A stretch of 64,000 nt of DNA from Girardia tigrina (taxonomy: Eukaryota). The stretch is taken from assembly GCA_001938485.1 (NCBI GenBank), contig MQRK01240841.1, positions 1 through 64,000 on the forward strand, given 5' to 3'. The notes below the pieces were generated by a model. The model saw only the letters and a program-made list of their open reading frames with translations. It was not told where the DNA came from and searched no databases. A program made the translations under genes and the position numbers. Of this stretch, positions 19,071-43,512 are shown piece after piece; positions within the stretch are counted from its first letter, which is position 1; the number at the start of each line of letters is the position of its first letter.

Positions 19071-19341
19071 ATGAGAGAATGGTCCGCAGTTGCTTATTTA
19101 TCCTGTTACGTTATCATTTTGATTTTAACATGGTTTCTAAATATTTTTCTAACAATCGGTATATGCAGCAGTCGTCAGCTTTTCCGCTGTAAATCCAAAA
19201 AACCGACCCCCCATTTCCAGTCAGCCTCCCTCTCGCGATGTGCACAACTGGCTAATTATTATTTTATTACTTCAATTTGTCTCTCAAATATAATCTCAGT
19301 CTCTCTCAATCCACCGTCATTCATAATGATGAATTGGTTTT
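19071..19341 (+). CDS. Exon encoding TM1-TM2 of a 5-HT2-like orphan class A GPCR
   Basis: MREWSAVAYLSCYVIILILTWFLNIFLTIGICSSRQL...ANYYFITSICLSNIISVSLNPPSFIMMNWF aligns to 5-HT2 TM1/TM2. Donor T|GTAAGT after 19341 (phase 1). A possible acceptor ...AATAG|19048 means the start could lie in an earlier exon. Confidence 0.85.
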
Positions 19342-21788
19342 GTAAGTTTATTTTGGTTTTAATTAATTTACAGTTGCCTAAGTAATTCTTCTATTTTTTA
19401 TTAATAATTGTGGACCAAATTCAATCAAAATAATGCATAATGCATAATCTTCTATACTTAATTTATTACTATTTTTATTATTATTATTAATAATAATATT
19501 AATAATAATAATATTTTAATTTGAGTTTCATTAATTCTAGGAATTTTTCATTATCAAAAATTTATTATTTCGTCATTTATTGTATCAAATAAAGATTATT
19601 TATAATTTTATTTATTTATAATTAATTATTATAATTTATTAATAACATAATCATACCGACAATTCAGATCTGAAATTTTACATTGAAAATGTTTTTTATT
19701 CTTACGAGTCTACAAATAAAAATATTTTTAATACTTTTTTTGTTAAAGAGATGCTGAAAATCCTTGAAACATTTTGCGACATTATTAATGGAAGATTCAT
19801 AATCAATTCGATAAAATAAAATATCTCCGAGTTTAATTTTTCTCTTTTTATGAACAATTAATTCTAAATTGATTGATTAAATCTTTCTTATTTTAGGAAA
19901 TTTATTTGTGGATTAGGATTCAATCATGAGCTTTTATGTAAAAATGTTTATTATATTACAATTTTTTATTAAATTAAATGATTTCCCACATGATATTACT
20001 CGTAAATAAAAATTTTTCAAAAGTTTTTTTTTAATTTTTAAATTTCGTAAAACTGCAACATAAATTTTTTTAGAACCTTTGAACTGAAATGTCTAATAAG
20101 GTTTGACATTGTTGTGAGAATAGGGATACTAAAGTGGATTAAATATAGGGTGAACCGAATTTTTAATCCACTTACGAATATAAATAAAAATAAAATCAAA
20201 ACGTTGAATTAAAAAGATTATATTAGTAATAATGCAGCAGAAGGATAAAACGAAGGATATCATAAAAAAAAAAGAAAATCAGTTATAGGGGATTCAATGA
20301 GTAAAAATGTTACTTTAATGTTGTCCAAAATTGATCATCAACAAAATAAATAATTGTATGGAGTGGTTCACGAATTTTCACGAAGATAAATACAAATCCG
20401 AAACTTTGAAGATGACTTGATTCTTAGAATTCCTCGGTTGAAACTTGGTGAGAGTGGTTTCTAATATTTTGGCTTTAAATTCATCTATTGAATCTTGTAT
20501 TGTTTTTTTATTGACTTTTTTTATTGTTATAATTCTAATTATATTATAATAATAATCTTAATATTATTATTATTATAATAATATTATATATAATTCTGCT
20601 AATATATAATTTTTTATTATCTTCCTAATTTTATCTTCTGTTATTGATTCTTTCTTTTCTCAGCAGTCCTCTCTAATTATTATTTACATAAATAAAAAAA
20701 AAATAAATCCCATTCAAAATACAAAAATGATTTTGTTTATAACACCACACACAAAAATAGATATTCATATGTAGATTTTGTTATAAATAAAAAAATATGC
20801 GGGCACTACAGATAAGATGGAGATTAGCGTAGGGATAAATAGTAAATTAAGGTATAGTATTATTATAGTGACATTATATTATAACAGAGTAGGGTGTAAC
20901 GGAAGGTAAAAACGAAAGTGAATAAAATGAATTACAATATAACACGAAAAAAGTCGAAAAAAAGTATATACAATGAAAATGTTAATTTGGAAAGTGGTAT
21001 ACCATATCAAATAACAGCTCAGTTTTGATAGACTAAAGACTCGGCACATTTAGATTTTGAATAGGATCGAATGAATTTAGTTCGAACTTTCGAGAGTCAA
21101 ATTGTCGTTTCTTCAATATTTTTTTCTTCTTGAATGCTCATCAACTTCGGTTTTGAAGGAATATTTTGTCGAAATAAAGGTCGGTAAAATTATTGGAGAT
21201 CCTTTGAAAGGTTATTTTGAAATTAATAATTAATGTCCTGAATAGAAAGTCGAAAACCAGAAAACGGAAGCTTGGAAATTTGTTTCTAATATTGTATTAG
21301 TTCCAATGGATTTATCGATTTTTATTTTTAAAATTATATATATTTAATCTATACATAAGCGACAGGTCACTAAAAATAACGTTTTTTACAAATAAAATTG
21401 GTATTATTTTGAATCTAAAAGCATCATACTGGATAAATCACAAAGACAAAACATAACAGTCCAAGAAGTAGCGTTTAGATAAATGAATAATTTAAATTAA
21501 GTTCCAAAAAATATATCAAATTACGTGAATCAATTTCAGTAAAATAAAAATTCAAGACCCATTTCAGTTGATCGCTTGAATAATTGGAAAAGATAATAAA
21601 ACATTTTCTAAAAATATAACCTTGTGATTAGAAAGAAGTTTATACGTAATGACATTATTGAATTTTAAAAATTATGAGAAACTAGAATAGGACCCATCAT
21701 GTATGAAATGAAAGCTACATTTTCATATTTGAAAGTTTCTCTTATTTACATATTTTTAAAATTCGAAAATATTTTTAATCTTAATATT

Positions 21789-22500
21789 CTAGACGTTCTA
21801 GCCAAGCAAGACGGCCCGTGAAAGTAAACAACAAAAAAATTAATTTCACAAAACTTTCAATCATCATAATAAAATTTAATATTAAATTTAAGCACTTTGG
21901 AGTTTCATTTATTGGATGAAACATATTTTGCTTTTCTTTTGTTATCGCTTTTTAAGTTGTTGAATATCGTAAGAATTTTCTTTAACCTAACATAAACCTA
22001 AACTCTAACGTAAAACCCCAACTGTAACCTTTATAACTGAAATGTTGATATTATTTATTAATACCGAAAATTTGAAATTTTATACTAAATTGATTTTAAG
22101 CAATATAATTAGAAAAAAAGTGTAAGAAATCGTCATTTAACAATTTAATTAATGTATTATTACTAATATTTTTATAAGTATATTGTTATTAGTATATTCA
22201 TAAAACCTCTAACAAAATTACTTTTAGGAATCATATAAATAGTCATTATTCTAAATCAGTGTTGATATGAAAATTCATCAACCAACACTGTTTTTGGTTA
22301 ATTACTTCAACTTCCCGGCATCTTTTGGCAAAAGCGCTGAATCAGCAGAACCGCCTTGGTGCGGGCCGTGCAGATTGACCACGCTCTTACGTAAATTTGC
22401 TCCGGTTCCGCCGCAGTGTTGCATTTTGATCATAGTGTGACCGACAAACCAACAAACAAACTAACTAAATAACAAACTAACATTTAAGTCAAATATATTC
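21789..22500 (-). mobile_element. Non-autonomous Helitron-like element (copy A)
   Basis: Minus strand begins with a (GTTT/GTTA)n microsatellite then GTCGGTCAC, and ends with an imperfect GC hairpin plus CTAG (21789-21792). GC core similar to 24260-24400. Confidence 0.6.
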
Positions 22501-23494
22501 TTTATGAAAAATATTATATTTGATTACTTTTTTTAATAAAAAAATTATAAGAAAAATTTTTAATTGAAAATTTTATTTATTTTTTTATTAAATTTTTATT
22601 TTATTTATTATAGAATAAAAATAAAAATTATATAATATAATTGAAATCATTACAAATTAATTATTTCCGTTCAAAGTACATTGAATTAATTATTATATAT
22701 TTTTTAGAATTAATGTATTATTTTAATAAAATCTTGTTTTTTTGTAATAATAAAACAGAGAAATTGATCGGTTTATCGAAAGCTGATTTGTCGTTAGAGA
22801 AAAACCCGTCTCAATATGAGATTCTCCTGGCTAATTCCAGATCATTAATCCTTGAATTTTCAATTAAGTCTATATATTCATTTTGCATCAGAAAAATAAA
22901 TTCTTTATTTCGAATAATTTTATATTCTTGTATATAAAAAACGAAAAAAAATATTTTGTTTGATATAATCAAATCCATAAATTTGTAAAACAAAAAAAAT
23001 CCAAATAACTATTTAATACATTTCTTTTGTTTGTGATAATCAGAAAAAAAAATTACTACGGATTTTCGTTTTAATAATTAATTAAATTTATTTTCTCTGA
23101 TTTATATTTATTTCATGAAAATTAATCAAAAGAAATTTATTTATATTTAAATTTGTTGAAATAATAAAAAATAATAGTCAAAATTAAAGTTTACAAATAT
23201 TTTTTATTTCGGTTTTTTTAATATTTTTCGTTTCTCATTTATTATTTTATCTATCAAAATACAATTTTATTTTCCGATTTTCCAGTCTCATAAATGTTTG
23301 ATGTGTTTTGAATATCTCCCGCATTATCGATTTTAAAAGACATCATCAATTATCAAGTTTTTATTAATGCAAAAATACTCTTTATTTAAATAATTTTAAT
23401 CGAAATTAAATTCAATTATTTTACTTGAATTTTTGAGAAAGTATTTATTTCATAAATCTCAAACCGGTATAATAAAAATAAATAATAAATAAAC

Positions 23495-23830
23495 TCTCTT
23501 TTCGACCATGTTCTTTAAGTAAGAGTAATATTGCAGAACATAGGAAAGAATCTAAATGTGATGTTAATTCTGATAATTTCAAAATTCTGTGCAAGTATTT
23601 TGACAGTTATTGGGAGAGAGTGTCGTGTGAAGCATTGTTAATTAGGTCACGTTGTCCTAAAATCAATGTTCAATCGGCAGTCTCAACCAGCTTATTGAGA
23701 ATTTTTGATTAGCGTGATTACATGCAATCGATTACATAATCATCATTTTTGTATTTATATACAGGTGAATCGATTATTAATTAGTGACCTGAAGATGACG
23801 GTAGATCCGTCGAAATATATTGTCTTGAAA
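23495..23830 (+). mobile_element. Penelope-like element 3' end (GIY-YIG C-terminus plus pLTR)
   Basis: SNIAEHRKESKCDVNSDNFKILCKYFDSYWERVSCEALLIRSRCPKINVQSAVSTSLLRIFD* is homologous to the end of the 7150 ORF. Confidence 0.8.
23786..23824 (+). ncRNA. Minimal type I hammerhead ribozyme in PLE pLTR
   Basis: GAC-CUGAAGA-U-GACGG(UAGAU)CCGUC-GAA-AUAUAU-U-GUC: intact core, 5-bp stem II, palindromic stem III, 3-bp stem I. Confidence 0.75.
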
Positions 23831-24123
23831 TATATTTTTAAATGGATGAGTGTTGTTATTAAAAGAAAATTTTCGCCCGGATTTCGTATTATTAATAACT
23901 TATTTTAATCTTTTTTTTAATTTGACGATTAAATAATTTCATTTTCTTTAAATAAACTTCTTAAATTTTATCATGCAGAAACTATTATTATTAACAGAAA
24001 CTTTATTTACTTCTTGATTTTTTTAAATTTATAATTCTACTTTTAATTCTATTATTATTTCAAAAATTTTTAAAATATTTTCTTAAAAATTTCTAACAAT
24101 AAATATTTTTAAAGTATTTAAAA

Positions 24124-24438
24124 CTAGAAAAATACCCGTCAAATATGATGGGTGAGCTGAATTTTCGACTTCGAAAGTTTTAATTTTTAAATCGTAATTA
24201 TTATACTTCATTATTAATTGTTTTGAATTCTGTGTTAATTTAACAGTCAGTCATATAAATCGGATCCCAGGGCCTTTCGGCCAAGGTGCTGCAACGACAA
24301 AATTATATTGATGCGAGCTATCCAGATTGACCTCGATCTTAAATGGATTCACTCTGGTTAGTCCGCAATTTCGCATCGAAATGCGTGACCGACAAACAAA
24401 CAAACAAACACACTTTTAGACAAATATTATATATATAA
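24124..24438 (-). mobile_element. Non-autonomous Helitron-like element (copy B)
   Basis: Minus strand: TATATATAATATTTGTC...(GTTT)n GTCGGTCACG ... hairpin ACCCATC-ATATTT-GACGGGT, then TTTTTCTAG followed by T. Confidence 0.7.
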
Positions 24439-24906
24439 TAATTTAACTTTAATAACTTCGTTTTATGAGTATTTCAGAAATAAGAATTGTTCTTTCCAAT
24501 TTAATATGTTTTAAAATAACTGAGGTCTCAATAAAATTAAGAATAATAATTTCATATCGTTGTTCAATTGGAATTTCAAGACTTTCCTCATAAAATGCCG
24601 ATATAATCAATGGAAAATCTCCCTGGAGAATTATTTTCTTTGTTTAGTAAGAAGGATAAAGCTTGATTATTCTTCAGAATTTTAGATGACAATTTCGCGA
24701 AGTATTTATTTTTTTACTTATACATTTTTTCTTGAAAAATTAATAAATACGACAGTATATAAATTAATAAATAAAGAATTCAAGGAAAAAAATGAATTAA
24801 AACCTTGTAAAGTATCTAACGAAGTGTTGGGATCGAGAAATTTCACAGTCAACACCAGGCCAATTCATTAAGGGGGTACTGAGTCCGATGGAAAATTTCT
24901 CGGGAT

Positions 24907-25191
24907 CTGAAATAAAATAAAATGATTATTAAAGAAATATAATATTAATTAATTAAAACTAACCTTAATTGATTTTGCACTTTGATCGGAAATAAAAATA
25001 TAATTATTAAGATGACTTAATTGAAAAAAACTTACTTAATTGATCTGGAATCTGAAATTATAAAAACAATGATTATTTATTTAGTTATAAAAAAAACTTA
25101 CTTGATCGATCTGATCGTTGATCCTTGTTGATCTGAAATGAAAAATATGATTATGTTTTTTTTATTGTGCACTTTGATTGTTTGCACTTAC
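24907..25191 (-). other. Array of four short spliceosomal-type introns separating micro-exons, apparently non-coding
   Basis: Minus-strand GTAAG/GTTAG...TAATYAT...TTTCAG units of 59, 50, 49 and 57 bp. One acceptor reads CCG instead of CAG. Exons are 31, 16 and 23 nt. Confidence 0.5.
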
Positions 25192-26477
25192 TTGATTGTT
25201 TGGACTTTGTTTTCGATAGGAATCTGCAGGGGCTCATAGTGCCTGCCGTGATTATTGACGATTTGACAGTGAATAAGAAAAAGATCTTGAAAGATAATTG
25301 AAGACAGCTGATCGGTTGATAGTTACCGGTGGGTGCTCATAGTGCCTGCTGAGTATATTGATGATCTGGTAGTCGAAAAAAATGTTCTGTATAGAACATC
25401 TTAAATGTCACCGTCCATGAGAAAGTCTAATAATCAAACCTCCATCAACCTCAACCTTTTTTTGTTGTCATTGTTAAACCTTTAATATCAATGTTGGATA
25501 ATTGATGAACATTTATGTTTTTAAGTTGATTTATATTCTTTTAAAATATTTAAAGATTATTCTGTGGAAATATAAGAAATCATCAGAATATAAAACAACA
25601 TGATATCTATAGAGATTTGTTCTTCTAGACATCAGATGGATGAATATTTATTAAAAAAAAGTTTACGAGGAACCCGGAAGGTATTTGATTTTGTTCACTG
25701 GTAAATCATTGGGCCAGATGAACCTAACCTGTTAGAAAATTCAAAAATGTCCGGGTCTTATAAATAAAATTACTTTCAATTTTGAGACATCTCGATATGA
25801 TTATTAAATCTAAAGTCTTATGATCAAATGATTATAAAATAAATGAATTAAATATTTTGAAACCTTCTTAATAGCGCACAATTAAAGTGTATCCATTATT
25901 TTTATCTTCTGTTGGACTTTTATTATCTTTTTTATGTATTATTTTTGAATTTTCGTTCTAATCTTGTTTATAAATTTTTTTTGTAATGGGGGTAATGCTA
26001 CTAACATTAAAATGGCTTCTCATCACGGATTCAAGAGCACATACGATTTGGCAATGGAAACAATATTAGTAGCAAAACTCGGGTGCAATTGATTCAGTAT
26101 CCTAAAAATACAATAGAAAATAAAATTCAGAAATAAAATGTGTTAGAAATTCGAAGCACAAATACATTATTAAATTGTATAAATAAAAATACTAAAATGA
26201 AAATGTAATAGTAATTTTTCGTGAAAATCTTAAATGTATTTTTTTAAAATATAAAACAGAAATTATTAAATGAAATTTTACAAAACTTAAGATCATAAAA
26301 TTAAAATTTTGGGTAAATTAGAATATAAATTATACAAATGAAATTCGTAAAAAGTTATTTTCACAACAATAAGAATATTAGTTAGAATTGTAAAATATAA
26401 AAATGAGAATTTTAAAAGGTAACGAAAATTTCTAATTTAAAGCCTATATTGTTAATTGCACGTATAGAAATTTAGAA

Positions 26478-26612
26478 TGTAGGCATCCTCCGCCGGAGGC
26501 AGCTCACGAGGACCTCGTGTGGCTCTTACCCGAGCTAACAGCTCAGAGAGCTTTTCAGGAGCTGAGTCGGTGTATCACTGTACAACAGAATTGATTGACG
26601 ACAATGCCAACA
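26478..26612. repeat. 135-bp TG...CA element (solo LTR/TRIM-like) with a highly structured GC core
   Basis: Ends TGTAGGCAT / ATGCCAACA (8 of 9 inverted match). Several internal hairpins. Confidence 0.4.
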
Positions 26613-29029
26613 ACGTTAAAATTTAAATATAATCTGGAGTGAAAACCTTGCACCTAACAAAATAGATATGCCATGTTTCGAGAATTCAGACAAATCATAG
26701 ACCATGCTTTTTAAAATCCCAACAAAAATGATTTTAATTTTTAATTTGATATAAAATGTTCAATTTCTTATGGATGTACAGATAGAAAATGTACTAATCC
26801 TAATTTTTTATGAAAAATAATAAATTGAATTTTGGATTTTCTAAAATATCTGGTTTAAAATTATTAAGAGAATGAAAGACGTTTCATGGCTAAAAACCTG
26901 ACAATAATCTTTTTAAATTGGTTTTTATTTAAAATTTATATAAATAATATCATATTACAAAATGGAAAAGAACTTTTATTTTTAAAATAAAATTTGACTA
27001 ATAATTCTTTTCGTTCTATTTTTCTCATTATTATTTTTTTCTAAAATTTGAAACTAATTAATTTAATAGATTATAATTAAATTATTTTCACTGACTGAAT
27101 TTTATTTGATGGATTCTCTGTGATTAATGTTAGAGAAAGAGGAAATTAAAACACCACAATTAGTAATTGTTAAACAACAAACTTTTTTGAAGAAAATGAC
27201 ATCAAATATGTTTTATAAAAAATTATATTGGAAAGAAATACATATTAAAACCAATTTAATTAAATTAATTTTGTAATAATTTTAAATTTGTTTTAATTAG
27301 AAACCAGACGACAATAACTAATGAAAAAAAATTAAATATATTTGAAGGAATTTTGAATAAATTTATATGTTTTTTTGAAAATTAAAAACAATCTTAAATC
27401 GTTTTCAAACAAGTAAAATTTTCTTTAACCGCTACATTTAAATATATAAATGTGAAACCCAAACAGATAAATTGTTATATATGTAACATTTTATTTTAAT
27501 GTGCGAAAAATAAATTTTTCTAAGCACTTTTTAATTACATTAGATCAATTTATTTATTTATTTATTTTTTACAGTAGGGCCATTGTTTTTACTGCATGGA
27601 AACTGAAACTATATATTTAAAATCTGCATATACCTGGTCGAAAAAATGTTCTGAAACAATTTTTGTTACAACCTGATCAAATTTATTATAAATTATAATT
27701 ATTGGTAATTATAATTACAAAAGGGTTAGTACCTTATGACTTAGTTTATAATTAATTATTCAATCAAAGAGTACTATTCCTCTAATAAATATAAATAAAA
27801 TATTATAGTTCTCGAACTAATATAACAAGAAAAGGTCGGAAGAAAAGAAATCTTAATAAACAGAAATGGAATAATATGGAAGGAAAAATAAACAAATGGA
27901 AATATCAAACGATTAATTGTTAGAACTTTGTAGAATAATAAGAATGAATATTGTTCTTCAGACAATATATTAATTGTTATCTTCTTTCGGAACGACCGAA
28001 TACTCCATAATAAAGAAATAAAGAACTTTTTCGTAAAAATTTATTTCAATCAACAATTTTATACTCTTTTTGAATTGTCACCAAACTCTGAATATTAAAA
28101 CAATTTCTTTATTTTAATATGATTCAGTTATTTTNNNNNNNNNNNNNNNNNNNNNNNNNNNNNNNNNNNNNNNNNNNNNNNNNNNNNNNNNNNNNNNNNN
28201 NNNNNNNNNNNNNNNNNNNNNNNTTAATTATTATGATGAAATTTTCTTAAAGAATTTTACATTATTATTCATTTAAATCAATTTAATTAATTTAATTTAA
28301 ATTCCATGCGGAATCAACTAAATTAATTTAAATTAAATTAATTATCGATCAAAAATTTTAGCTTCTAATTTAATCCCTAACATTAATAATGTAATCCAAT
28401 TAGGTGAGATTAATTGAGGTCGAGGCCCTTGATTAAAAAATTTTGAACTTTGATTAAATAGATTATTTTTTACTGTCAGATTGGGGAAACAAATCGAGAT
28501 TTGTTTTGCGAATTTAAGCAATTTAATTAGTTTTTTTTTTAAAATCAATATTAATTAAAAATATTAAATGTTTATAAATAAAAATATATTAATTGATAAT
28601 ATAAATATATTATATGATAATAAATATGATTATATCAAGGGGTTGTACAATAAGTGGTCCTTACAGTGATATTTGATGAACAAAATCTTTCTTTTGATTA
28701 ATCTTTTTGGCTTTTATTGTATAATTAAATTATTATCATTTCACCAGTATGGTAAGGAAAACTTGTTTACGGTTTGTTCCACGGTACTTTGCCACAGAAA
28801 TGTTTGACAGAAATATATCTCGGGTTGTAAAGCGACAGACTTTGTGGAAAAATATTACTTCTCTTTTGACATTGACAGCTATGTTTTTTTTCGTATAAGA
28901 TTTGTTTTTTCTTCAACTTAAATCTTACACATTTTTCTAACTACAGTGTGCCCAATGGAAAACTAAAGGATTTTATGAAAGGAAAGTGCATTTAATTAAA
29001 CACATGATAAATGCAAACAATTATATTTA

Positions 29030-29490
29030 CATAAATAGTTGCTTGCTGTTTAGAGGTGTTCAAAATGTCTTCCAACATTGTGTCAAATCTTTTGAAGACC
29101 TTGAATCAACGAAGCTGTGACCTTGAGAATGACTTCCATGTCGATGTTATGTCATGCGAATAGTAAAGCACTTTTAAGTTCATCAACCGTGACAATATCG
29201 TTGCGTACAACTTGCAAATTTTTTAGAAGAATTTCCGAGACACTATGGTTCATAACCTTTAGGTCGGAACTGTTCTATGGCAACTCAGAAGGCCTGATGA
29301 TTTGAGATGTGTTCTTCTCTAACCAATTAACTGTAGCCGTAGCAGTTTGAGGTTTTGCCCCGTCTTAATTAAATAAATAAAATCCTTTGGGTTTATTTTT
29401 GTAATTATAAATTTATTTGCCTTTATCACGTGTTTAATTAATTACACTTTTGTTTCATAAAATCATTTGGTTTTCTACTGGGTGCCCTGT
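29030..29490 (-). mobile_element. Degenerate maT/mariner-like transposase remnant
   Basis: DGAKPQTATATVNWLEKN...NSSDLKVMNHSV motif on the minus strand. ...GGTGCCCTG followed by TA is TIR-like. Confidence 0.5.
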
Positions 29491-30189: not shown

Positions 30190-31290
30190 TTAACAACAAC
30201 CTTTCGATGATTTACCATCTGACTATCCAGAATACATAAATCAATGGTGCTAAAGAAACGAGCTCCAATAAGTTAATCTAGCATTTCCTCGATGTTAGAC
30301 ATCGGATAAACTTGTCTTTTGATCACTTTATTTAATTGCCTAAAATCCAAAGAAAGTCTAATTTCCTGTTTGTCTTTTTTTCACATACAAACCATAGGTG
30401 TGTTCCAGGATGAATTGCATCGTTTTATTATGTTGTTGTCTTCCAGATTTTTCATCAATTCCTCAATTTTATTTTCTAAATTTGCTGGTTGTCTTCTTGG
30501 TTTCAATAAAATGGGATCACCCTTTGTAACAATTGAATTTTTCAAAAGTTTTTTGCAACCCACATCCCATTTATATGCTATAAATATACCAATTTCTGCT
30601 AACATATCTCTCTTTCTGACAGCTCCAACAAACAACTGAGTTTCTCGAATGTTTATTGTTTGCATGATTCCATTTTGTTCTTTCCATAAGTAGTTTTACT
30701 AACCGTGAATTTGAAAATTGTTGGTGCTTTTGTACGATTTTGGCAAACATTTCTTTTCGATTGACTGCTGATATTTGAATTGATTCTTCTTCTCTTTCAA
30801 TACTGTCAATCTTCCGAATAACTTATTTGATCTGATCCACGTTATTGGTATCTCGTAAACGTAATTCCCTTTTGATAGTGCTATTCTTAATACAATATAC
30901 CAAAAAATACGCCATTAATTCTTTGTCATCCCATTTAATTTGACATTAATTATTTTAAACTATTTTTCCAATTTTATCGAAGTACAAATTTGCTCCATCC
31001 GAACCTTTTTCGTATGAATATAAATTCATAAAATCTTGTATTAACGATGAAGGTTTTGAAAATGCCATTCTGAGTCTTTCCTCGAACTCCACGATATTTG
31101 GGTCCACTTGTTCATAGACTGCAATTAAATCTCTGGAATGAAATGCCTTAACCATAATTCCTTTTAGATTTGGGTCGGTGCCAGGTACTTCGAAAAATCT
31201 TCTACATTCTTCAATAAATTCTTCTAAGTTATTTTCTTCGTTGTAAGTTTCGGTAACCAGATTCTTCCAATAACTGAACGTGGTCGCCAT
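30190..31290 (-). mobile_element. Gypsy element remnant: PBS, gag and 5' part of RT, internally deleted
   Basis: gag ETYNEENNLEEFIEECRRFF. RT NIIKRCNSSWNTPMVC...IRLSLDFRQLNK...YPMSNIEEMLD...FFSTIDL. TGGCGACCACG at 31279-31289. Confidence 0.85.
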
Positions 31291-33118: not shown

Positions 33119-33232
33119 AGTTTAAAGATCAAAAGTTGTTTTTTGAAAAATTCCTTGTCGTCATTTTTTAAATATTTATATAAAATATATTAATCATTTT
33201 CTTATAGAAAATGGTCAATAGTAACAAAATTA

Positions 33233-33447: not shown

Positions 33448-34173
33448 TACTAAAAACTAATTTTGTTTGAATAATCAAATTTCTAACGTGGAAATTAAAA
33501 ATGGTGGTTTATAATGAAATACTGAAAATAATACAATAAATTTTATTTCTTAATCGCCTTTCGAGTTGAATTCGTTCAATTTAAAAAATTAAAAACCGAA
33601 CCAGTCAATGCTTCAAAAGTATGTAAAAAAGTATCAATTACCGTTTCGTCAAAAGTTTTCGACCTTCCGAGCATTTATGACCACTATGCAGGTGATGGTT
33701 TTTTCTATTCACCTTTTGAACCTTTTCAAAAATGTTCTCATCGGAGAAGAATTTTGACATTTTTGTGTCCAAGTCTCATCACTCTTTCTTATTGATTCCT
33801 AGGATGTGAGCTGTTCTTAAAAAATATGACTTCATTTTCTCCCAAAAATATGATTTTGTGAATCACACCCATTTGTTGGTCATATAATGCATTAATGTGC
33901 CGGTGTAAGTGTTTGAGAAATGAATAAAGTTGAGGCATAAAAAAGTTTCCTTAATTTCATTATACCTCTTATTTATTCGGTAAACAAAGCTCTTTCAAAG
34001 CTTCCAAATCAAAATCAAGTGTACATACACAAAAGCGTCAAGCTATTTATTTTTCATGTTTATACTTTATGACTCTAAAGATATTTTAGACATTATACAA
34101 GTAAATATTAATGTACAAAGTTCATTAGTTTCCCTGTAATATAGTTTGAGCTAATTTATCGGTGCCAGCCTAA

Positions 34174-36042
34174 AAGAGAAGGCAAAATGGACATTCTGTC
34201 CCACCCCAATGGGAGGGTTTACCAGTTGCCATGGAAACGGTTACCATAGCAACGGTCGTGGTTAACATGGCAACGGTTCCGGTCACCTTAGCAACGGTTC
34301 CCATCACCCTAGCAACGGTTCCCATCACCCTAGCAACTGTTCTGACCACCCTTGCAACGGTTTCGTTCACCCTGGCACCGGTAACCAAGGGACGTTTTTC
34401 ATTAGCAACGGATGCAGTGATTCAAGGTGCTTGTAATCATGATAACGGTTACCGTATCCATAGCAACCGTGACCCTTTCTTTAGCAACCGAAGAAAAAAG
34501 TGCTAATCGATCGCTGCAGTGCCCAGATGTGTTTATCGATATTTTTAAAGTGCTAATCGATAGTACACATTGTGCCGCACATTTCTAATGTACAGTGCTT
34601 TTAATGTTGCACATGTGCAAAAGTGCAAAAATCAATACATTAAATTTTTTAAAAGTACTAGTGTCAAAAATCGATATCATGTGCTTGATGCACATTTCGT
34701 TTTTAATGTATCACTTGTAATAAATAGACACAAGGCGGGACTTTGAATTGTTAATTCTCTAAATATAGTCGAATTTTGTACAAAATAATGTAAATTATGT
34801 TTTATACTTTGCTGGCTAGACTAGGCTATGGACATTCCACCTCACTTTACTCTATAATACACAACATATCAATAATCGATTAGTTTACGTATCTTCAAAA
34901 ATCTAAGATCCTATTCCGACTATTAATCTATGGGTTTCTATACATGTGTTCAGACAGATTTTCGATATCTTACTTCCTTCGACCTCTGCCTAGCTCTTTT
35001 ATATAAAAAGCATAAATATAGTACACTTTGCACAATTGTGAACTTATTGATTTTGCACACTTGCACATGTGAAGTATTGTTTAACACATGTTCATTATTG
35101 ATTAGCACATGTGCAGTATTGATTAGCGAGTTTATACGAATGTAGTATTGAATTTTGCACTTTTTTCTGTAATTTTGGTGGTTTTACATGTTTTCAATGA
35201 TCTTTAAGGTGTTTTTCATGGTTTTAAAGGTAACGGTGATGGTTTCTAAGGTGTTTTCGATTGTTTTATATATAGTATTAAAAGGTTATGTATCATGGTT
35301 ACGGTAACCAAGGTACGTGTGATTGTTAGTGAGGTACATTAAATGATATGGAATCTGAATGTACGTATATAGGTTACTATTCAAAAGCATTAGCACTTTT
35401 TGAAATTCTGCTTTCTTCTGTCTCTAAAATCGATGTGCATTTTGTGTAAATATACACATTATGTTAATTATAGGAAAAAGTAATCAATATTTGAAAATTC
35501 TAATTGCACATTCAGATAAAAAATCAAAATGTGCATCAAACACATGATATCGATTTTTGACACTAGTACTTTTAAAAAATTTTATGTATTGATTTTTGTA
35601 CTTTTGCACATGGGCAACTTAAAAAAGCACTGTGCTAATACATTATAAATGTGCGGCACACTGTGCACTATCGATTAGCATTTTAAAAATATCGATAAGT
35701 ACATCTGGGCACAGTGCAGTGATCGATTAGCACTTTTTTCTACGGTTGCTAGGGAAAGGATTAGGTTGCTATGAATACAGTAACCGTTAACATGGTTACA
35801 ACCACCTTGAATCACTGTATCCGTTGCTAATGAAAAACGTTCCTTGGTTACCGTTGCTATGCTAATTAAGACCTTGGTTACCGTTACCCAGGGAACCGGA
35901 ACCGTTGCTACCTAGGCTAGGGTAATCGGAACCGTGCTAGAGTGATCATAAACCGTTGCTATGGTAACCGGAACCGTTGCCATGGCAACGGGTAACCCTC
36001 CCGGGGGGTCTTTTGTGGCAGAATGCCCATTTTCCCCCTACT
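34174..36042. mobile_element. Complete non-autonomous long-TIR element (Polinton/Maverick-like)
   Basis: ~520-bp imperfect TIRs (34174-~34697 / ~35527-36042) with 21-bp subterminal tandem repeats. Direct flanking duplication GCCTAA(A) at 34168 and 36043. AG...CT type termini. No real ORF. Confidence 0.75.
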
Positions 36043-36879
36043 GCCTAAACATTCATACTGAAAAAGAATGGTTGGTTTAAGTAGTTTTTACCCCAATTTA
36101 TCTGGGTCAACTTATTTATTTATATTTTTTAATTATTTATGTTGGGTTGCTCTAACAAGGAATGCAGATTTTTTTCTATTCTTTTTAAAAATATTATCTG
36201 CATACTTTATTATTTTTATATGAATTATTTTTAAGACAGCTTGATTTATCTCGATTTCAAAACAATAAAAATAAAAACAATTCATGCAAAAAAAGAAAAT
36301 TAGATGTTTAATTTATAAAAATATTTAATTAAAATTAAAATATTAAAAAGATATTAATTAAAATTAATTTTAAACACTTTTATTTAAAACAAAATAAAAT
36401 GAGAACAAATAAAATAGAAAGTATTTCTAATTCAATTTTTAAACAATTAAATTAAATTAATGAAACAAAATATTCCATTTTAATTTACATTTTAATTAGA
36501 TTTAGATTCAGAAATTTGAAAAATATTCAAATAATAAAAATTTATTTTTCTTTATATATATTTAAACATAAATAAATTAATTTTTGAATATTTTTTAGAG
36601 ATTTCAGAAAAAATATTAAAACATATTTTAAAAACAAGCCATAAAAAATTTTCCATGTAAATATATTTAATTATTTATAAATTTATTTCATTGAAAATAT
36701 TTTTTTAAATGGAATTTATAAACAAAAATATTTTATATTTTTTGGGGAAAAAAATATATTTTTTAATTAATATTTCCAAAAATTAAATAATAAATTGAGT
36801 TATAAAACAAGAAAAATTATTTATTTGTGTAGTGAATTTTTTCTAATTTAAATTAAATTTATATCCCATTGAAAATCGA

Positions 36880-37790
36880 TATGTTTTAAATTTGATGAAA
36901 GTGAAAAGAAATTTAAGGGACCTGATAAATCAAAACCATGATTTATAAAGTTCTTTATGAATTTCTTTATTATAAATAATTATATAGTTGGAGCTAGGTC
37001 TGGTGAGTATTTAGGATGATGCAGAAGTTCCAACTTGAGTTCTTGTAGTTTTGACACGGTCTTAAGTGCAGTATGTGGTATTGTATTGTCGTGGAGCAAG
37101 ATGGAAATCAACCTGTTTACCAAACGCGGCTGTTTTTCTTTGAGTTTCTGCATCACATCTTTCAATAGGTTGATGCAGACATCTGCTTTGGTTAGCGAAC
37201 AGGTTTCATGAAGTCATAATGGATTACACCTGCTGCAGACCACAAATCATTCACTATTAGTTTCTTTTGATAATTTTGTACTTTGGATAATGTTGTAGGG
37301 CTTTGTTCGTATCCACCCAGATTACTTAACATTTTAAATTATCATTTTAGATCAACTTTCATCACAAGTGACTGTAATCGCAATTTTAGCGACAAAGCAT
37401 CATCAAGGAGTACTTAAGCACTTTCATTTCTGATTTTCGTTCAACTCATGTGAAATCCTCTTCCCCAATTTGAGCCAAGTGATTCAATATTGTTTACTTT
37501 GTAACAGCAAATGTAAGCGATAAATCATGAGTTCTTTGTGATGAATCCACCTTCATGGTTACTTTCAGTTCATCATTGTCTACCCCTATTTTCGGGTGAT
37601 CCCGAGACTCATTAAGGTTAAAATTACCTTTTAGAAATTTCCTTTAAAAATTAAAGACTCTGTTGTTTATTAGCAGACTATACTATTGATTTTATATATA
37701 TTATATACTATTGATGTTTCTCATGCTTTCCACGTAAAAAAAATCGTACTTCATTATAGTTTGAATTCATGTCTTTTCCATTTTTTAAAA
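36880..37790 (-). mobile_element. Degenerate mariner (DD34D)
   Basis: LKEKQPRLVNRLISILLHDNTIPH...HPKYSPDLAPT. Upstream VTCDE-like motif. Confidence 0.8.
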
Positions 37791-38343
37791 TACTGATAAT
37801 TACAATTATTATTTTACAAAATCTCTTTTTGAAAGTTTGGTGTAATTGTAGCAAATAAGAAATCTATGAAAATACATATATCATTGCTTATTTTCTTTAT
37901 ATATCAATTTTTTTATTTTATTTTATTAAAAATCTTTCAGAAAAAAACATGAATTTTAGACTCCCTTTTGAGAAAAGAGTTGCAGTAATTTGAGAAATTT
38001 GAGATAAGTTGAGTCTGACTATCTCTTCATATTGAATTTTTGTAAGCCAAAGATAAATTATTTAGTTTAGAAATTGAAAGAAACTTGTCATCATTTAAAA
38101 CTCGATAGATAAGTCTGAATTTCAATAATAATCAATGGTTATAGGGAAAACTGGGAAAATAGTGGAAAATACACTCGGTGATTGCGTTTACCATTCTTCT
38201 TCAATAATGACTTGGTGGTAGATTTTACATTCCCAATAGTTTATTTAAGTTCAGTGAAGTTCTGACTTATAAATACAAAAGTATTCGCTTACAAACGTTG
38301 GACATACAATTCTCTATATTGACTGTGATTAGTTACTTAATTA

Positions 38344-39790
38344 CAGGGGCGTAGCCAACGCTAATCAATAGAGGGGGCTGCTGGAAATTTAGGGGGGACT
38401 CATTTTGGTATCATTTATTAAAATGTGACTCTTCTTAAGAAAGTACTCGATTACAATACTGATTAAGAATAATTGAAACAAAATTTGCTATTTAATTTTT
38501 TCAGTTTTTATGACAATATAACATAAAGTATGATAATTATAATTGTAATTTCCGGTTTTTGTTTGAGTTAAATCTTTGGAGCAATTTTTCCATATTGATA
38601 CATTTGGCTCGATTTAATTAAAAAGCTAGATATACCAAATCGAACAGACGAGCGTTATTATCGACCGTCTTTGAGGCCTGTTAATGCAAGTTAACACGGA
38701 ATAAGTCGATTCGCACGAGCTGTGTTGCATCCAAAGGCTGCTACACTGGCTAGCAATTTGTATTTTTCTTCAAATGCAACTCGCCGTTCATATATTGCCT
38801 GGAAGGATAAATACAAAACAAAAGATATCAATAGAAGCATTAAAAACTCAATTTTATCAAGAAAGGATCCAAATGAGCGTTTTTATCCAAATAGCTCTTA
38901 ACCACAACGAACTCTTCCCTTGAGGGTTGATTATTCCAAGGGAAACGAAAGGTTTTAATTTAAAGAAGTCCATATCATTTATTGATGATATCACCGTATG
39001 TAGTTCATCATTATCATGAAATCTGTGTTTAATCTCACTGTAAACAATGAATATCGTCCATAATACGCTGCTTGCAATGACTCAATGGTGTTTCTACTTG
39101 AATTGGGTGATGACATAATCTCTTAAACTTTTCATTTCAGTTTATTACCGCTTTACATTATTAAGAAATTATTCTTCATTTTCTGACAACAACAACTGAG
39201 ATTCTTGTTTGTATTATTTGAAAATTTTCTGTTTATCTGAGTTTAGATTTTGCAGCAAAGGTAGAGTTTATGATTTTCATGGTATCGTTAAGACCAATTT
39301 CTCAACGTTAGAGAATTTTGTCTGTGGATTCAACTAATCTCAATTTACATTTTATCTTGATTAAAACAATACGGAAATCGATATCGCTTAAAACTTTTAT
39401 CGATCCTTCAGTGAGAGCTACGTCATTTCCACCAACATTGGTTGATTGTATTTGTTTTAATGTTTGAAGAATTTCAGCATAATTGCTTAATATGATACTG
39501 GTAATTTTCAAATTGTCCTTGCCATCGATGCTCCAATAACCGTGGAACTTTATCACCTTAATAAAGTGCTGCAATTCTAGGATGTGAGAGGAATGCATGT
39601 AGCACATTGGTCGAAATATAGCTTCAAAATACTAACTCTGGAAGTAGCTTTTACTATCACCAGATGAAGCCGGTGATTGAAACAGTGAAAGTATGGTATT
39701 TTCCTTTGAAGTTTGACGTTTATCTTTGCTTGGAAGTCTCCAAATGATCCACTCATTATTCTAGCCCCATCGTACCATTGACTAAGCAGA
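38344..39790 (-). mobile_element. Degenerate hAT transposon (3' part)
   Basis: Terminus CAGGGGCGTAGCC with G-rich subterminal motifs. Minus strand SSCESTYSVLTCINRPQRRS-type dimerisation remnant. 39308-39607 fragment. Confidence 0.6.
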
Positions 39791-40414
39791 TTATGAGGAG
39801 ATAATTAATTTTTGGTTCGCTGATCCAAATTTAAATATATTTAAAAAAGATTATTTTGAATTAAAATCAAATTGAAAATTTAAAAAATTAAGTAGAATTA
39901 TTGACGTATTTTAGATTATAATTTAAAAACATTCTTTACAAATTTATTTTGAATTAAAATATTATTTTAATAGAAAAATTAGTTGATCAAAACAGATAAA
40001 AGATAAAACAGTATTTTTAAAAATAATTTAAATCTGATTAAAAAACTTTATTATTATTTGTAAAAATGTATTTTCAAATTTTAAATTAATTTAATGATAA
40101 GATTAAAACATTAAATATTTAAAAAATAAAAAATTGAATATTAAATATAACGTATTTTTAAAATTTCTAAAATAATAAAATCTTAAAAACGGTTTTTTAA
40201 AAAAAAACAGTGCAAAATTACAAAAACATCATATAAGATTTTAATTGAAATAATAATTATTGTATTACTGAATAATTATAATATGAAATAAAAAATAATC
40301 GATAAACATATGGAACAGGAATTTAAAAAAAATAATAATACTTTACTCACCGAACGACGGATAATTTTATGATAATAATTATAATTTGACAATCCCAGCC
40401 ATAAAAGCCATAAG

Positions 40415-42112
40415 AATTTTTTTTAAATCTAGCATAATACAACAAATTACGTAACAATTTTTTTCAAAAAATTTTGGAAAAACAAGTTAATTAATGATTC
40501 ATTTTATAGATTATTCAATTTTAAACAACTTTTTTGAAGTAAACGTATGCCCTGAAATGAACAGTAACAAAGTTATTTAATAAAAACAATATTTATTATT
40601 ATAAAAGATTTTAATAGTGAGATCCTTCTGAAACAATTACATTTCTTAATCGTCGCTCAAAGTTGTTTACAACTCTTTTTAACATTTCAGGAGTGATCTC
40701 TCGAATCCTGGCTTCAATTCGATTTTTTAAATCTTCCAAATTAACAACTGCAGTTCCATAAATACCATCCTTTATGAATCTCAAAAGAAAATAATCGCAT
40801 GGATTCAAATCAGATGAATAAGGAGGCCAACATATCCCTTTATCAGTAAATTTCTCTGAATCCAATCCTATTATTCGACTGTCAAAATGTTCTGAAAGAT
40901 AATCTAATACTTCGCAGGTTCCTTGCGGTCTAGCACCATCTTGCATGAAATAAAAGTCGTTTATTTTTCCCAAACCATACAAATAAGGTACCACTTGTTC
41001 TTGAAGAATGTTTAAATAAACCATTGATTTAATATTTTCAGAAAACATAACCGGTTCAATAATCATTTCTGAAGATAAACCACATCAGACAGTTAATCTT
41101 TTAGGGTGCAAGGGTTTAATAATGGAATAATGTGGATTTTCGGATTTTCAAATTCTACAATTTTGCTTATTAACTTATCCTTCCATTTGAAAGTGCGCTT
41201 CATCTGAAAACAAAATCTTTCCGAAATCAATATCGTTATTTTCTGCCATTGTCAACAATTGATTTGCAAATTTCAAACGTCTTTCACCAGAAAGTTGATT
41301 TATGGGTTGATCTTTTTGAATCTTGTATGGAAATAAGGACAATTCTTTCTTGATAATTCTTTGTACCGATGATTTGATGATATCCAGTTGCTTACTTGCC
41401 ATTATAATCGATGTTGAAGGGCTTTGCTTGATCAATTCCTCAATTTTCTTAACATTTTCTTCGACAATACTACTTCGCTACCAAAAATCATAAATTAGTC
41501 AAATACTCTAAAATAATGATAAAAATAGTTCAATTCATTTTAAATGCCTTTACTAACCTTTTAATTGTCTTTGGATCTATATTGTGGTGATTTCCAAACT
41601 TTTTCTTGAATAATTTAACCACTTCTGATGGTGAATTCGTATTACGATAAAATAAAACCATAAAACATCGTTGTTCTGTAGAATATCGGTTCATTTTCGC
41701 TGAATAAAGATGAAACTTGAACACTGTCGAAACTAAAACACACTCTAAATAAACAATATGGATTCTAGGAATCAAAATTTAATTACAAATTGGTCGATTT
41801 ATTGTTTTAATCGATGAAATTAATTTAAATATCGATAAATCAAAATTTTTAAAACTTATAATTTATTGAATAACTTTGTTACTGTTCGTTTTAGGGCATA
41901 AGTTTACTTCAAAAAAGTTGTTTAAAATTGAATAATCTATAAAATTAGTCATTATTTAACTTGTTTTTCCAAATTTTTTTGAAAATTTTGTTACGTAATT
42001 TGTTATATGATGCTAGATTTAAAAAAAAATTATTAGTCATTATACAATATATAGACCATTAAATTCAATTTAACATCAAAATTAGCGAAGGCATACCATG
42101 TGGGACACCCTG
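40415..42112 (-). mobile_element. rosa-like Tc1/mariner with long TIRs and a DD47D triad (pseudogenised)
   Basis: MNRYSTEQR start, ILFSDEAHF, FMQDGARP...WPPYSSDLNPCD. Inverted repeat ~40415-40578 / ~41869-42030. Right end GGGACACCCTG followed by TA; left TIR tip missing. Confidence 0.9.
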
Positions 42113-42358
42113 TACATTAATATATTGACAATATTACTTTAGTAAATAAATTGGTAAATAATCTTCACATAAGTTACCAATTTGATCTTCTGAGTAAGCT
42201 GAAAATAACAGAAATAAGAAAAATAATTTACAAAAATAGACATTTTATACACAAACGTTATTTAAACCATGATGTACTGTTAATATTATTATTATTATTA
42301 TTATGAATTTATAAAATATTCATTATTATAATTTATAAATAATTTCTTTTAAATTTAG

Positions 42359-43512
42359 ATATCAAGAACACAAATAATGCCAAACTATTTTGTCTATTTC
42401 ATTCAAGTATGAATACATTTCTCTGTAATCTAGCATTTCTTCATGTTTTATGTTCGAGTCTCGATACATTTTTTCGTTTACGAAATCCAAGACTTTATCT
42501 TGACAGTCAAAGACCCCAAACTACATTCCTCAAAGTTTCCGCACCTTGGATTGTCACAACAATCCAAGCTGCCTGCCAGTTGACAATTAACAATCAAAAG
42601 ACTGTAACAATCGAAAACTCACTTTGCTTAATTGACGATGGAAACTTCTTGATACTGAGAAGTGTGATATCTTATGCAGTTCCATTAGTCGTTTGTGTGA
42701 TTTTAATAATATTACAGATCATTTATTTAAGATTTCTTACATCAGTCAGTATTGCTAATTTAGAATTTCTTTTACGATCTTATTCTTTGAATAAAATTAA
42801 CGAAAAATGTGAGTCGGATGAAACCTGTCAACTAAATGCATTCGACAATAGTCAGTCTAATAATGAGATAAATGAAAACGAAGAAATGATTTCCGAAACA
42901 AACGTTATGGATAGTTCAATTTCCAGAGATCCTATTAACCCTATTCTACAATCGCCAAAATTAGTATCAGCAAGTACATCAAGAATATTGAAGCATAATT
43001 GCCCAAAGCACGGTCTTATTTCTTTTCCAGTAGTTATTCAAGAGTCTCCACAAATCATTGATTTGACTTCAACATCCAATCTTCTGACAATGAGTAATGA
43101 TAGAACAAAAAGCACTCTTCATAAATCAGTATCTTTTGAAATGCCAGACATAACAAATTTAGCTAAATCTGCTGAAACAATTGCTGAAATGAGAAACAAA
43201 GAATCCTCTAGATATTCTTCTAATAAAAAGTCATGGTTGAAAATGTATAAAACTGAGCAATTATCAATAGCGATGAATATGATAATGTGTATTATATCAA
43301 TTGGTGTATGGTCTCCTCTCATATTATCTACATTGGCTTACAAATTGTGTAAAGAATCTCCTTGTACCATTCATATCTTGGTTGACCGGATTAATGATTT
43401 CGAATGGTGGGCATATGCTGGGGGATTAGCATATCCATGTATTTTTCTGTTTATAGATTCCACAATACGAAAATCACTTAAATCATATATTTGTGCTCAT
43501 TTTAGAAAATAA
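42359..43512 (+). CDS. Terminal exon (TM3-TM7 and C-tail) of the 5-HT2-like orphan GPCR; spliced product 474 aa if started at 19071
   Basis: Acceptor TTTAG|AT, phase 1, in frame with the 19341 donor (T+AT = Tyr). TM3 Cys, SLDTFFRLRNP, ECL2/TM5 SLCLIDDGNFLILRSVISYAVPLVV, long ICL3, VWSP in TM6, LAYPCIF in TM7, helix 8. Intact 1154-nt exon. Confidence 0.9.

Follow-up and report, generated by a model that had tools for sequence, protein, structure and literature searches.

Structure of the Locus

The DNA considered here, hereafter the window, is a stretch of 64,000 nucleotides (nt) from contig MQRK01240841.1 of the planarian Girardia tigrina, with a GC content of about 0.25, and all positions given below are those of this window. 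Between positions 19071 and 43512, its forward strand carries what is likely, as the best explanation overall, to be a single functional gene whose two exons encode a class A G-protein-coupled receptor (GPCR) of 474 residues. That the gene is real and under selection is highly probable. It is a member of a receptor family, old and conserved, that spans flatworms and other spiralian worms and in which the arginine at position 3.50 has been lost. The recognition of this clade, of its residue signature and of its affinity to the type 2 receptors of 5-hydroxytryptamine (5-HT2) appears to be new here; the individual genes were already in databases, and GCR085 of Schmidtea mediterranea had been catalogued.

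Exon 1 (19071-19341, plus strand) begins with an ATG and comprises 90 codons, which encode a very short N-terminus, transmembrane helix (TM) 1, an extended first intracellular loop (ICL1), TM2 and the start of the first extracellular loop (ECL1); the codon of Asn1.50 in TM1 lies at 19140-19142 and that of the Asn replacing Asp2.50 in TM2 at 19287-19289. The exon ends as ...AAT TGG TTT T|GTAAGT at 19341/19342, its last base being the first of a split tyrosine codon, T|AT. The phase-1 donor GTAAGT (19342-19347, plus strand), which reads GTAAGA in the orthologue and GTAAGT in a paralogue, L013, opens an intron of 23,017 nt as written (19342-42358, plus strand; GC 0.26), which contains transposon debris and one assembly gap. 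A pyrimidine/AT-rich tract and splice acceptor, ...TTTCTTTTAAATTTAG, close the intron at 42344-42358 (plus strand), tttag|AT being found also in the orthologue (contig L001). The junction at 42358/42359 reads ...TTTCTTTTAAATTTAG|AT ATC AAG..., its acceptor side being also written ...AAATTTAG|AT ATC, and the predicted spliced reading across it is ...AATTGGTTTT|ATATCAAG.... Exon 2 (42359-43512, plus strand) supplies the two bases completing the split codon and 383 codons for the remainder of ECL1, TM3 to TM7 and helix 8, and ends in the stop TAA at 43510-43512. The coding total, 271 + 1154 = 1425 nt, is divisible by three and gives 474 amino acids and a stop, so the in-phase splice of two open reading frames (ORFs) into an uninterrupted seven-helix protein, from which the initial annotation started, was borne out.

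The assembly gap (89 N, 28135-28223) lies inside the intron between AT-rich non-coding flanks, 8.8 kb beyond exon 1 and 14.1 kb ahead of exon 2, and is crossed by no reading frame; it bears only on the length of the intron and on the assumption that the scaffold was joined correctly. Within the 23-kb intron there is no second exon-1-like or exon-2-like match, and the contig holds a single copy of each exon type, with similar divergence from the paralogue (43% identity in exon 1, 49% in exon 2). A candidate mini-intron in the long ICL1 (GTAAAT...CCAG, 19189-19220, 32 nt) was rejected because, judged by eye, taking it out would change the frame and run into a stop codon. The orthologue and GCR085 have the long ICL1 as well. 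Each exon was searched separately, and GCR085 stood in for the full-length protein in searching and folding.

Splicing Evidence and Purifying Selection

The genome of G. tigrina itself contains three exon-2 paralogues, L003, L004 and L006, with 49%, 31% and 35% identity to exon 2 of the window gene, and one exon-1 paralogue, L013, with 43%; the phase-1 splice sites of all four stand at the same ECL1 position. The window gene, the orthologue and three of the paralogues, all of them planarian, share a phase-1 intron that lies in ECL1 some 10-12 codons ahead of Cys3.25. GCR085 (P0004; ANO39052.1), returned by an exhaustive profile search, is the orthologue of the paralogue represented by L013 and L003 (85% identity across exon 2), and it derives from de novo transcriptomes, in which its ORF is flagged as complete (Saberi et al. 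2016, PMC4862687). Over the predicted junction it reads ...RWL-N-FNNNPLWKVYC..., it has no further coding exons, and its start and end match the window model. Because this transcript carries exactly the predicted join, the two-exon architecture is proven at the mRNA level for the sister gene. Public sequencing runs that contain 94-98% of the exon-2 words exist and may be of RNA.

A second, related species is represented by genomic contigs from one public run. Its exon 2 (contig L001; protein P0001) is 86-87% identical at the amino acid level and keeps the acceptor tttag|AT, and its exon 1 (L018) is 74% identical, with an identical ATG, 90 codons and the donor T|gtaag. The start codon, the 90 + 383 codons, donor, acceptor, phase, split tyrosine codon and all of the odd motifs described below are kept between the two species, and outside the exons their sequences do not align. 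Between the orthologues, synonymous divergence (dS) is saturated (>1.4) and nonsynonymous divergence (dN) is 0.05-0.17, so that their ratio (omega) is 0.03-0.06 in exon 2 and 0.03-0.1 in exon 1. Identity rises to 95% in the TM core, with synonymous differences in 99 of its 202 codons and a changed residue in 10 (omega ~0.03). Even the long third intracellular loop (ICL3; 42736-43251, plus strand) retains 77% identity, with omega about 0.08. These values point to strong purifying selection on the window gene, as the initial annotation had anticipated in calling it intact and retained. Since a related species keeps its exons, ATG, splice sites and motifs with low dN/dS, and since the GCR085 transcript is spliced at the same point, it is regarded as a working gene and not a relic.

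The Encoded Receptor and Its Changed Motifs

Exon 1 alone has no significant database match, and the 'WSA' of TM1, which had been read as a 5-HT2 feature, has no statistical support by itself. A profile of exon-1 homologues, in turn, matches the TM1-TM2 region of class A receptors, with expectation values (E) of 1e-10 to 1e-7 against aminergic receptors (5-HT4, 1.6e-10; 5-HT2A, 1.2e-7). Exon 2 aligns in HMMER with TM3-TM5 and TM6-helix 8 of 5-HT2A/2C, and the hydropathy peaks agree; the 5-HT2 segment matches claimed earlier therefore hold for this exon, of which 5-HT2A/2C is the top match and whose TM5 stretch CLIDDGNFLILRSVISYAVPL matches its 5-HT2A/2C counterpart. The seven-helix topology is collinear with that of class A receptors. 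An AlphaFold2 (AF2) model of GCR085, computed from an 80-sequence alignment, agrees with this, with seven helices and helix 8 at a predicted local distance difference test score (pLDDT) of about 90, a hairpin in ECL2 and a disordered ICL3 (pLDDT 77.5 and predicted template modelling score, pTM, 0.77 for the model). The cysteines of the TM3-ECL2 disulfide, Cys3.25 and Cys45.50, are retained in alignment with 5-HT2A/2C, as had been noticed by eye, and together with Pro5.50, Trp6.48, Pro6.50 and Pro7.50 they make up a set of class A landmarks that is complete in the window gene and nearly so throughout its family.

Around these landmarks the protein is heavily altered, and each of the motif changes first listed by eye, namely Asp2.50 to Asn, Asp3.32 to Asn, DRY to DTF, CWxP to VWSP and NPxxY to YPCIF, is present in the alignments. 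The first of them was established from the family alignment of TM1-TM2 and from the alignment of GCR085 to 5-HT2C. On the plus strand, Asn at 3.32 replaces the amine counter-ion Asp at 42412-42414 (SMNTF versus SLDVL); D-T-F-F-R, with DTF in the place of DRY and an arginine one helical turn lower, at 3.53, occupies 42463-42477; Arg5.42, a pocket-facing position with Gly in 5-HT2, is encoded at 42658-42660; V-W-S-P, which keeps Trp6.48 and Pro6.50, at 43306-43317; the pocket-facing Glu7.39 at 43402-43404; and Y-P-C-I-F, which keeps Pro7.50, at 43432-43446. In aminergic receptors, positions 5.42 and 7.39 face the ligand pocket, and Arg3.50, Tyr5.58 and Tyr7.53 constitute the G-protein-facing switch. 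The activation microswitches Asp2.50/Arg3.50/Tyr5.58/Asn7.49/Tyr7.53 read N/T/I/Y/F in the window protein, and positions 6.44/6.51/6.52/6.55 read S/L/I/T in place of F/F/F/N; the pocket residues W6.48, W7.40, Y7.43, S5.43 and S5.46 are retained.

An Old Receptor Family without Arg3.50

A profile of six members, searched against 1.84 billion protein representatives, gave 946 matches with the family lacking Arg3.50 at the top; a word-based protein search recovered just the orthologue and a single Schistosoma protein but not GCR085, and its blanks therefore carry no information. The sampled family numbers at least 29 receptors, which stem from triclad planarians, trematodes, cestodes and a nemertean, with others from public assemblies; where the source is named, members and sequences sharing the signature are from S. 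mediterranea, Macrostomum, Schistosoma, Fasciola, Dicrocoelium, Calicophoron, Schistocephalus, Tubulanus and Capitella. The Macrostomum and the annelid Capitella sequences, which show DTW and DTF motifs and no Arg3.50, are partial and were left out of the trees. In the Shimodaira-Hasegawa-like approximate likelihood ratio test (SH-aLRT), the 29-row clade receives a support of 100, its flatworm part 98, and a subclade joining GCR085 with a cestode/trematode LPxxL group 99. In databases these proteins are filed as hypothetical, dopamine-like or alpha-2 adrenergic-like.

Arg3.50 is absent from 28 of the 29 clade members and from all 22 flatworm members, and present in all 80 canonical relatives. 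Position 3.53, occupied by T, A, S or G in canonical receptors, is basic in each of the 31 clade rows of the residue table, being Lys in the nemertean and Arg in the others, and the cytoplasmic end of TM3 as a whole, D-x-[FY]-[FL]-R-L-x-x-P, varies little or not at all within the clade. Asp2.50 is lost in every member for which TM2 is available, and Phe6.44 and Phe6.52 are lost clade-wide (canonical relatives 80/80 and 78/80, with F6.51 in 80/80 and N6.55 in 69/80). Asn or His stands at 3.37 in the clade and its flatworm branch, compared with T/S in canonical receptors. Conversely, the family keeps Cys3.25-Cys45.50, Asp3.49, Pro5.50, Trp6.48, Pro6.50, Trp7.40, Tyr/Phe7.43 and, mostly, Pro7.50.

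Other characters divide the clade. Position 5.42 is Arg in 22/22 flatworm members and in the nemertean, and Gly in 8 of the 9 non-flatworm rows (canonical G/A/S; Ser in 18 other aminergic ORFs of the same genome). Tyr5.58 is lost in the flatworm branch and kept in 5/9 non-flatworm rows (canonical 74/80); Asn7.49 is likewise lost in flatworms and, among the non-flatworm rows, kept only by the nemertean (canonical 80/80); Tyr7.53 is mostly lost in flatworms and kept in 6/9 of the others (canonical 80/80). The helix 8 marker is an invariant Asp in the flatworm branch, Asn/Ser/Val elsewhere in the clade and N/S in canonical receptors. At 7.39 the clade usually has K, R or H (canonical V/L/T/E), Glu being found only in the window gene and its orthologue, and Asn3.32 is confined to these two and the GCR085/L003 pair, with Glu in the flukes and Asp in other members. 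The window gene carries all markers of the flatworm branch, namely Arg5.42, Ile6.52, the helix 8 Asp and the ICL3 motif H-x-C-P-x-H-G.

Most of the apparent losses of the window gene are thus old, fixed characters of the family, accompanied by fixed gains, and only two changes are lineage-specific: that of Asp3.32 to Asn, which the GCR085 subclade has too, and Glu7.39, which is confined to this orthologue pair. Neofunctionalisation of this one gene, as proposed in the initial annotation, does not fit losses that flukes, tapeworms and a nemertean of the clade have in common with it. A paper recognising the clade, its signature or its 5-HT2 affinity was not found, which is weak evidence, most subscription journals lying outside the literature searched; the locus tag of the Fasciola member was not found in the supplements of McVeigh et al., and the orthologue gave no match in that of Saberi et al., a blank of no weight, since the species may differ.

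The ICL3 motif, H-N-C-P-K-H-G in the window protein (42994-43014, plus strand), has H212, P215 and G218 invariant in planarian and schistosome members of the flatworm branch. It was also observed in L004, L006, P0002 and P0007-P0010, from planarians to schistosomes and Fasciola, within an otherwise fast-evolving ICL3; the GCR085 copy is degenerate (H-F-H-P-Q-V-G, no Cys) and modelled by AF2 at low confidence. The motif could be a putative metal-binding or docking site. A sister group of the flatworm family (P0027, P0029, P0032, P0036, P0043 and P0052), drawn mostly from environmental or sequencing-run assemblies, was further observed which mostly lacks Arg3.50 and has Arg3.53, Gly5.42, G/V/Q at 7.49 and the ICL3 motif S-C-T-L-L-L-R; the partial Capitella sequence P0068 is similar in motifs.

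Relationship to 5-HT2 Receptors

The TM3-TM7 part of the window protein resembles 5-HT2A/2C more than any other solved receptor. Against solved structures, exon 2 ranks 5-HT2A/5-HT2C first (54 bits, E 1e-13), followed by D2 (30) and 5-HT1A (25); the family profile gives 103 bits on 5-HT2A/2C, 60 on D2 and 49 on 5-HT1A, and the nemertean member and GCR085 score 102 versus 72 and 52 versus 38 bits, respectively, for 5-HT2 versus the next receptor type. Foldseek places 5-HT2A/2C as the best matches of the GCR085 model, and the nearest canonical proteins among the 1.84 billion searched are a lamprey 5-HT2B, a Lingula 5-HT2C and a Tubulanus 5-HT2B-like receptor, in which DRY and NPxxY are kept. In addition, the ECL2-TM5 motif C-x-x-x-D-x-N-F and, in the non-flatworm members, Gly5.42 are common to the family and 5-HT2-type receptors and absent from the 18 other aminergic ORFs.

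A first outgroup tree, unrooted and with six aminergic ORFs, left the closest groups undecidable, and 12 aminergic, 3 S1-like and 13 non-aminergic ORFs were then added, the enlarged set being aligned with MAFFT --add. The resulting 98 rows consist of 29 family members, 35 database 5-HT2-type sequences with the 3 S1-like ORFs, 18 other aminergic ORFs (for three of which the best solved match gave the label alpha-2-like or 5-HT1A-like) and 13 non-aminergic class A ORFs. In the maximum-likelihood (ML) tree, a branch of length 0.70 (SH-aLRT 98) divides the family and the 5-HT2-type receptors from the remaining rows. Descent from 5-HT2 receptors is, as judged from these comparisons, the best-supported reading and a fairly probable one.

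Flatworm serotonin receptors had been described in the initial annotation as usually classed as 5-HT1/4/7-like, which would make a 5-HT2 descendant notable; this misreads the names S1/S4/S7 of the planarian receptors, which derive from SER-1/SER-4/SER-7 of C. elegans (PMC4569474), SER-1 and the planarian S1 receptors being classed as 5-HT2 type (PMC8584985). S. mediterranea GCR012, GCR027 and GCR086 are annotated as 5-HT2b/2a/2c-like (Saberi et al., PMC4862687), and the genome of G. tigrina contains three CYLP-type S1-like ORFs. A 5-HT2 relative in a planarian is therefore unsurprising, as the S1 clade already represents the canonical 5-HT2 type there; the real surprise is the rewired sister family. 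Within the canonical 5-HT2-type receptors, a clade with Tyr for Trp6.48 (C/F-Y-L-P) was also observed, consisting of L045, L046 and L048 of the same genome together with P0041, P0044, P0050, P0079, P0083, P0086 and P0099, among them a nemertean sequence; it matches the published planarian S1 receptors, and its Tyr6.48 means that this lineage has deviated from the CWxP rule a second time, in a milder way.

Possible Mechanism and Alternative Explanations

We propose that the window gene encodes an orphan receptor which would be competent both in ligand binding and in signalling. Arg3.53, which lies on the same helix face as the lost Arg3.50 and one turn further down, may have become the centre of a rebuilt cytoplasmic coupling surface; such a takeover is suggested by the invariance of D-x-[FY]-[FL]-R-L at the end of TM3. 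The pocket, with Asn3.32, Arg5.42 and Glu7.39 and devoid of Phe6.51/6.52, would no longer fit serotonin in its classical pose, and the ligand would more likely be either a small molecule that bears an acidic or zwitterionic group or an amine held in place by Glu7.39. As a mechanism of signalling and ligand recognition this is put forward tentatively. The Arg3.53 reading suggests a maintained coupling surface in preference to a silent decoy, with a G-protein-independent role nearly as likely. Carried over to the whole family, the proposal becomes somewhat more doubtful: in an ancient spiralian branch of 5-HT2 receptors the coupling arginine would have moved from 3.50 to 3.53, and a cation-binding pocket (Asp3.32, aromatic TM6) would have turned into one with a cationic lining (Arg5.42, Lys/Arg7.39), accommodating an acidic or zwitterionic ligand, perhaps an amino-acid or indole-acid metabolite, with non-canonical activation.

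Several points weigh against a functional 5-HT2-derived receptor of this kind. Exon 2 alone scores 18.3 bits (E 0.0018) on Pfam 7tm_1 (PF00001), below the cut-off of 30.5 and far from the 100-237 bits of the canonical receptors of the same genome, and exon 1 alone has no Pfam match. The link between the exons spans the scaffold gap, the junction of the window gene itself is known from genomic sequence, the mRNA-level proof belonging to its sister gene GCR085, and the saturation of dS makes the omega values rough. The statements on signalling and ligand derive from residue identities and general GPCR knowledge, and the joint loss of D2.50, R3.50, Y5.58, N7.49 and Y7.53 would fit a G-protein-silent receptor equally well. 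As to descent, the trees are 'quick' searches on 190 columns; the family stem is long (1.33 in the 98-row tree and 1.3-1.5 changes per column across trees), which invites long-branch artefacts; the 98-row tree does not fix the position of the family within the 5-HT2 set; and under the approximately unbiased (AU) test a placement of the family outside the canonical aminergic receptors as a whole is not rejected (difference in log-likelihood 8.4, p = 0.32).

The weak Pfam scores, the 23-kb intron with its gap and the genomic origin of the gene model are also what could be said for a pseudogene or a mis-joined pair of ORFs, that is, for unrelated frames that only seem to splice or for a decaying relic. 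This explanation is largely refuted and retains very little credibility: both frames are intact in two species with omega of about 0.03-0.1 and with ATG, donor, acceptor and phase conserved, the mRNA of the paralogue has exactly this join, and each exon type occurs once on the contig at matching divergence from that paralogue. A pseudogene in particular is excluded by the identity of the odd motifs in both species together with the low omega at saturated dS. The AU test and the long stem speak, in turn, for the view that the family is an independent, fast-evolving class A lineage whose likeness to 5-HT2 is partial or a long-branch artefact. GCR085 could be cited for it as well, having been only catalogued, in the cluster 'Rho-x' (unclustered), with a D-type dopamine receptor as its top BLAST hit (Saberi et al., PMC4862687). 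In view of the margin for 5-HT2A/2C over the next receptor type in three independent queries (25 bits for exon 2, 43 for the profile and 30 for the nemertean), of the SH-aLRT of the joining branch in the best ML tree, and of the common C-x-x-x-D-x-N-F motif and Gly5.42, we consider it rather unlikely. The 5-HT2 descent suggested from the first thus has the tree in its favour, without the AU test rejecting the outside placement.

With regard to function, a receptor that still responds to serotonin or another monoamine, anchored by Glu7.39, and signals conventionally would account for the retention of W6.48, W7.40, Y7.43, S5.43 and S5.46, for a Glu at a pocket position and for the D or E kept at 3.32 by most clade members. 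Schistosome SmGPR-1/2, which bear N3.32, respond to histamine (PMC3289605); Asn3.32 alone therefore need not abolish an amine response, which warns against assigning a ligand class from one residue, and the 'non-amine ligand' favoured in the initial annotation is not forced by the sequence. However, L, I and T stand in the place of F6.51, F6.52 and N6.55, a cationic Arg5.42 occurs in every flatworm member and K/R/H at 7.39 in most members of the family, and the SmGPRs, unlike the window gene, keep DRY, CWxP and NPxxY, all of which makes a conventional monoamine receptor improbable. It is possible, if doubtful, that the protein is an atypical receptor which would bind ligand without activating G proteins and act as a scavenger or decoy, as an arrestin-only signaller or as a modulating partner of canonical receptors. 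The replacement of the five activation residues and of F6.44 of the PIF motif is in keeping with such a role, and the extreme conservation of the TM core argues that some binding function is kept. On the other hand, the near-invariant end of TM3 with its fixed basic residue at 3.53 resembles a maintained and not a relaxed coupling surface, and ICL3 has a conserved motif and is under constraint. The decoy, constitutively signalling and dimer-partner roles suggested in the initial annotation are conjectural.

Genomic Surroundings and Significance

The window is AT-rich and full of transposon remnants, inside and around the receptor gene, and the length of the 23-kb intron is attributed to this debris. 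Retroelement/transposase-like ORFs were recognised by eye from their translations in the intron (30381-31290 and 40611-41066, minus strand), and further debris at 50700-50993 and 4754-5173 (plus strand). In a Pfam search of ten intron and flank ORFs, only that at 47410-47742 (minus strand) matched a family, as a DDE_3 transposase fragment (E 1.8e-13); the remaining debris reads by eye as fragments of retroelement gag/pol, integrase and mariner-type transposase. Several receptor loci recur, at the same scores and coordinate offsets, on two, three or four contigs each (C138876/C217292/C224409, C138265/C138266/C252806 and C42092/C131204/C226617/C252701); the assembly (1.43 Gb, 255,254 contigs) therefore holds redundant copies or haplotigs, and paralogue counts are upper bounds.

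If the family signals, a class A receptor can work without Asp2.50, Arg3.50, Tyr5.58, Asn7.49 and Tyr7.53, and the fixed Arg3.53 offers a testable candidate for how it does so. If the reading of the pocket is true, planarians, flukes and tapeworms would sense a small-molecule transmitter or metabolite not yet known. Genes of this family are easily missed or misfiled, since they fall below the Pfam 7tm_1 cut-off exon by exon and carry wrong or hypothetical database labels. As members occur in Schistosoma, Fasciola, Dicrocoelium, Calicophoron and Schistocephalus, and as no vertebrate member was found among the best matches of the 1.84-billion-protein search, the family is a candidate parasite-selective drug target.

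Comparison with Known Receptor Systems

Among vertebrates, the ACKR family and C5aR2 are DRY-less class A receptors that have lost the Arg3.50 switch, and they could serve as a model for G-protein-independent action. They belong to unrelated lineages, the chemokine and complement peptide receptors, and no fixed replacement arginine at 3.53 is known in them; the likeness to the window family is functional speculation. PROF1/Srfb and other flatworm orphan rhodopsins (PMC3261222, PMC6114109) are class A orphans with degenerate classical motifs. PROF1, however, is intronless, has no significant homology to known GPCRs and shows other motif patterns (PMC3261222), whereas the window gene has an intron and its family reaches beyond flatworms; membership of the window gene in PROF1/Srfb or fwRhod was rejected on account of its 23-kb intron and clear 5-HT2 homology (E 1e-13 to 5-HT2A).

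The SmGPR clade (SmGPR-1/2/3) shares with the window gene the status of flatworm amine-like receptors and the change of Asp3.32 to Asn (PMC3289605). SmGPRs nevertheless keep DRY, FxxCWxPFF and NPxxY and have been found in schistosomes only (PMC3289605), whereas the window gene has none of the three motifs intact and belongs to a different, phylum-spanning clade, so that membership in the SmGPR clade was also rejected. The nearest comparison is GCR085, which agrees with the window gene in N3.32, DTF, xWSP, YPxxY/F, R3.53, R5.42, the extended ICL1 and the exon junction; it is a paralogue and not an orthologue (~42-49% identity), and it has His, not Glu, at 7.39.

The canonical 5-HT2 receptors (HTR2A/2C, SER-1, planarian S1) provide the frame in which these changes are best described. 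The TM2-ECL1-TM3 region of the window protein is collinear with theirs, with nothing missing, as seen through GCR085 and 5-HT2C; the TM3-ECL2 disulfide, C-x-x-x-D-x-N-F, W6.48, W7.40, Y7.43, the ECL3 pair C-K-E-S-(P)-C and a helix 8 with Cys near its end are common to both, and S5.43/S5.46 match 5-HT2A. Unlike them, the window protein has Asn for D2.50 and D3.32, DTF, Arg3.53, Arg5.42, Ile for Y5.58, YPCIF, and S, L, I and T for F6.44, F6.51, F6.52 and N6.55, as well as a four-residue N-terminus, a longer ICL1 and no tail beyond helix 8. A long branch with good support separates the family to which it belongs from each of the 80 canonical relatives.

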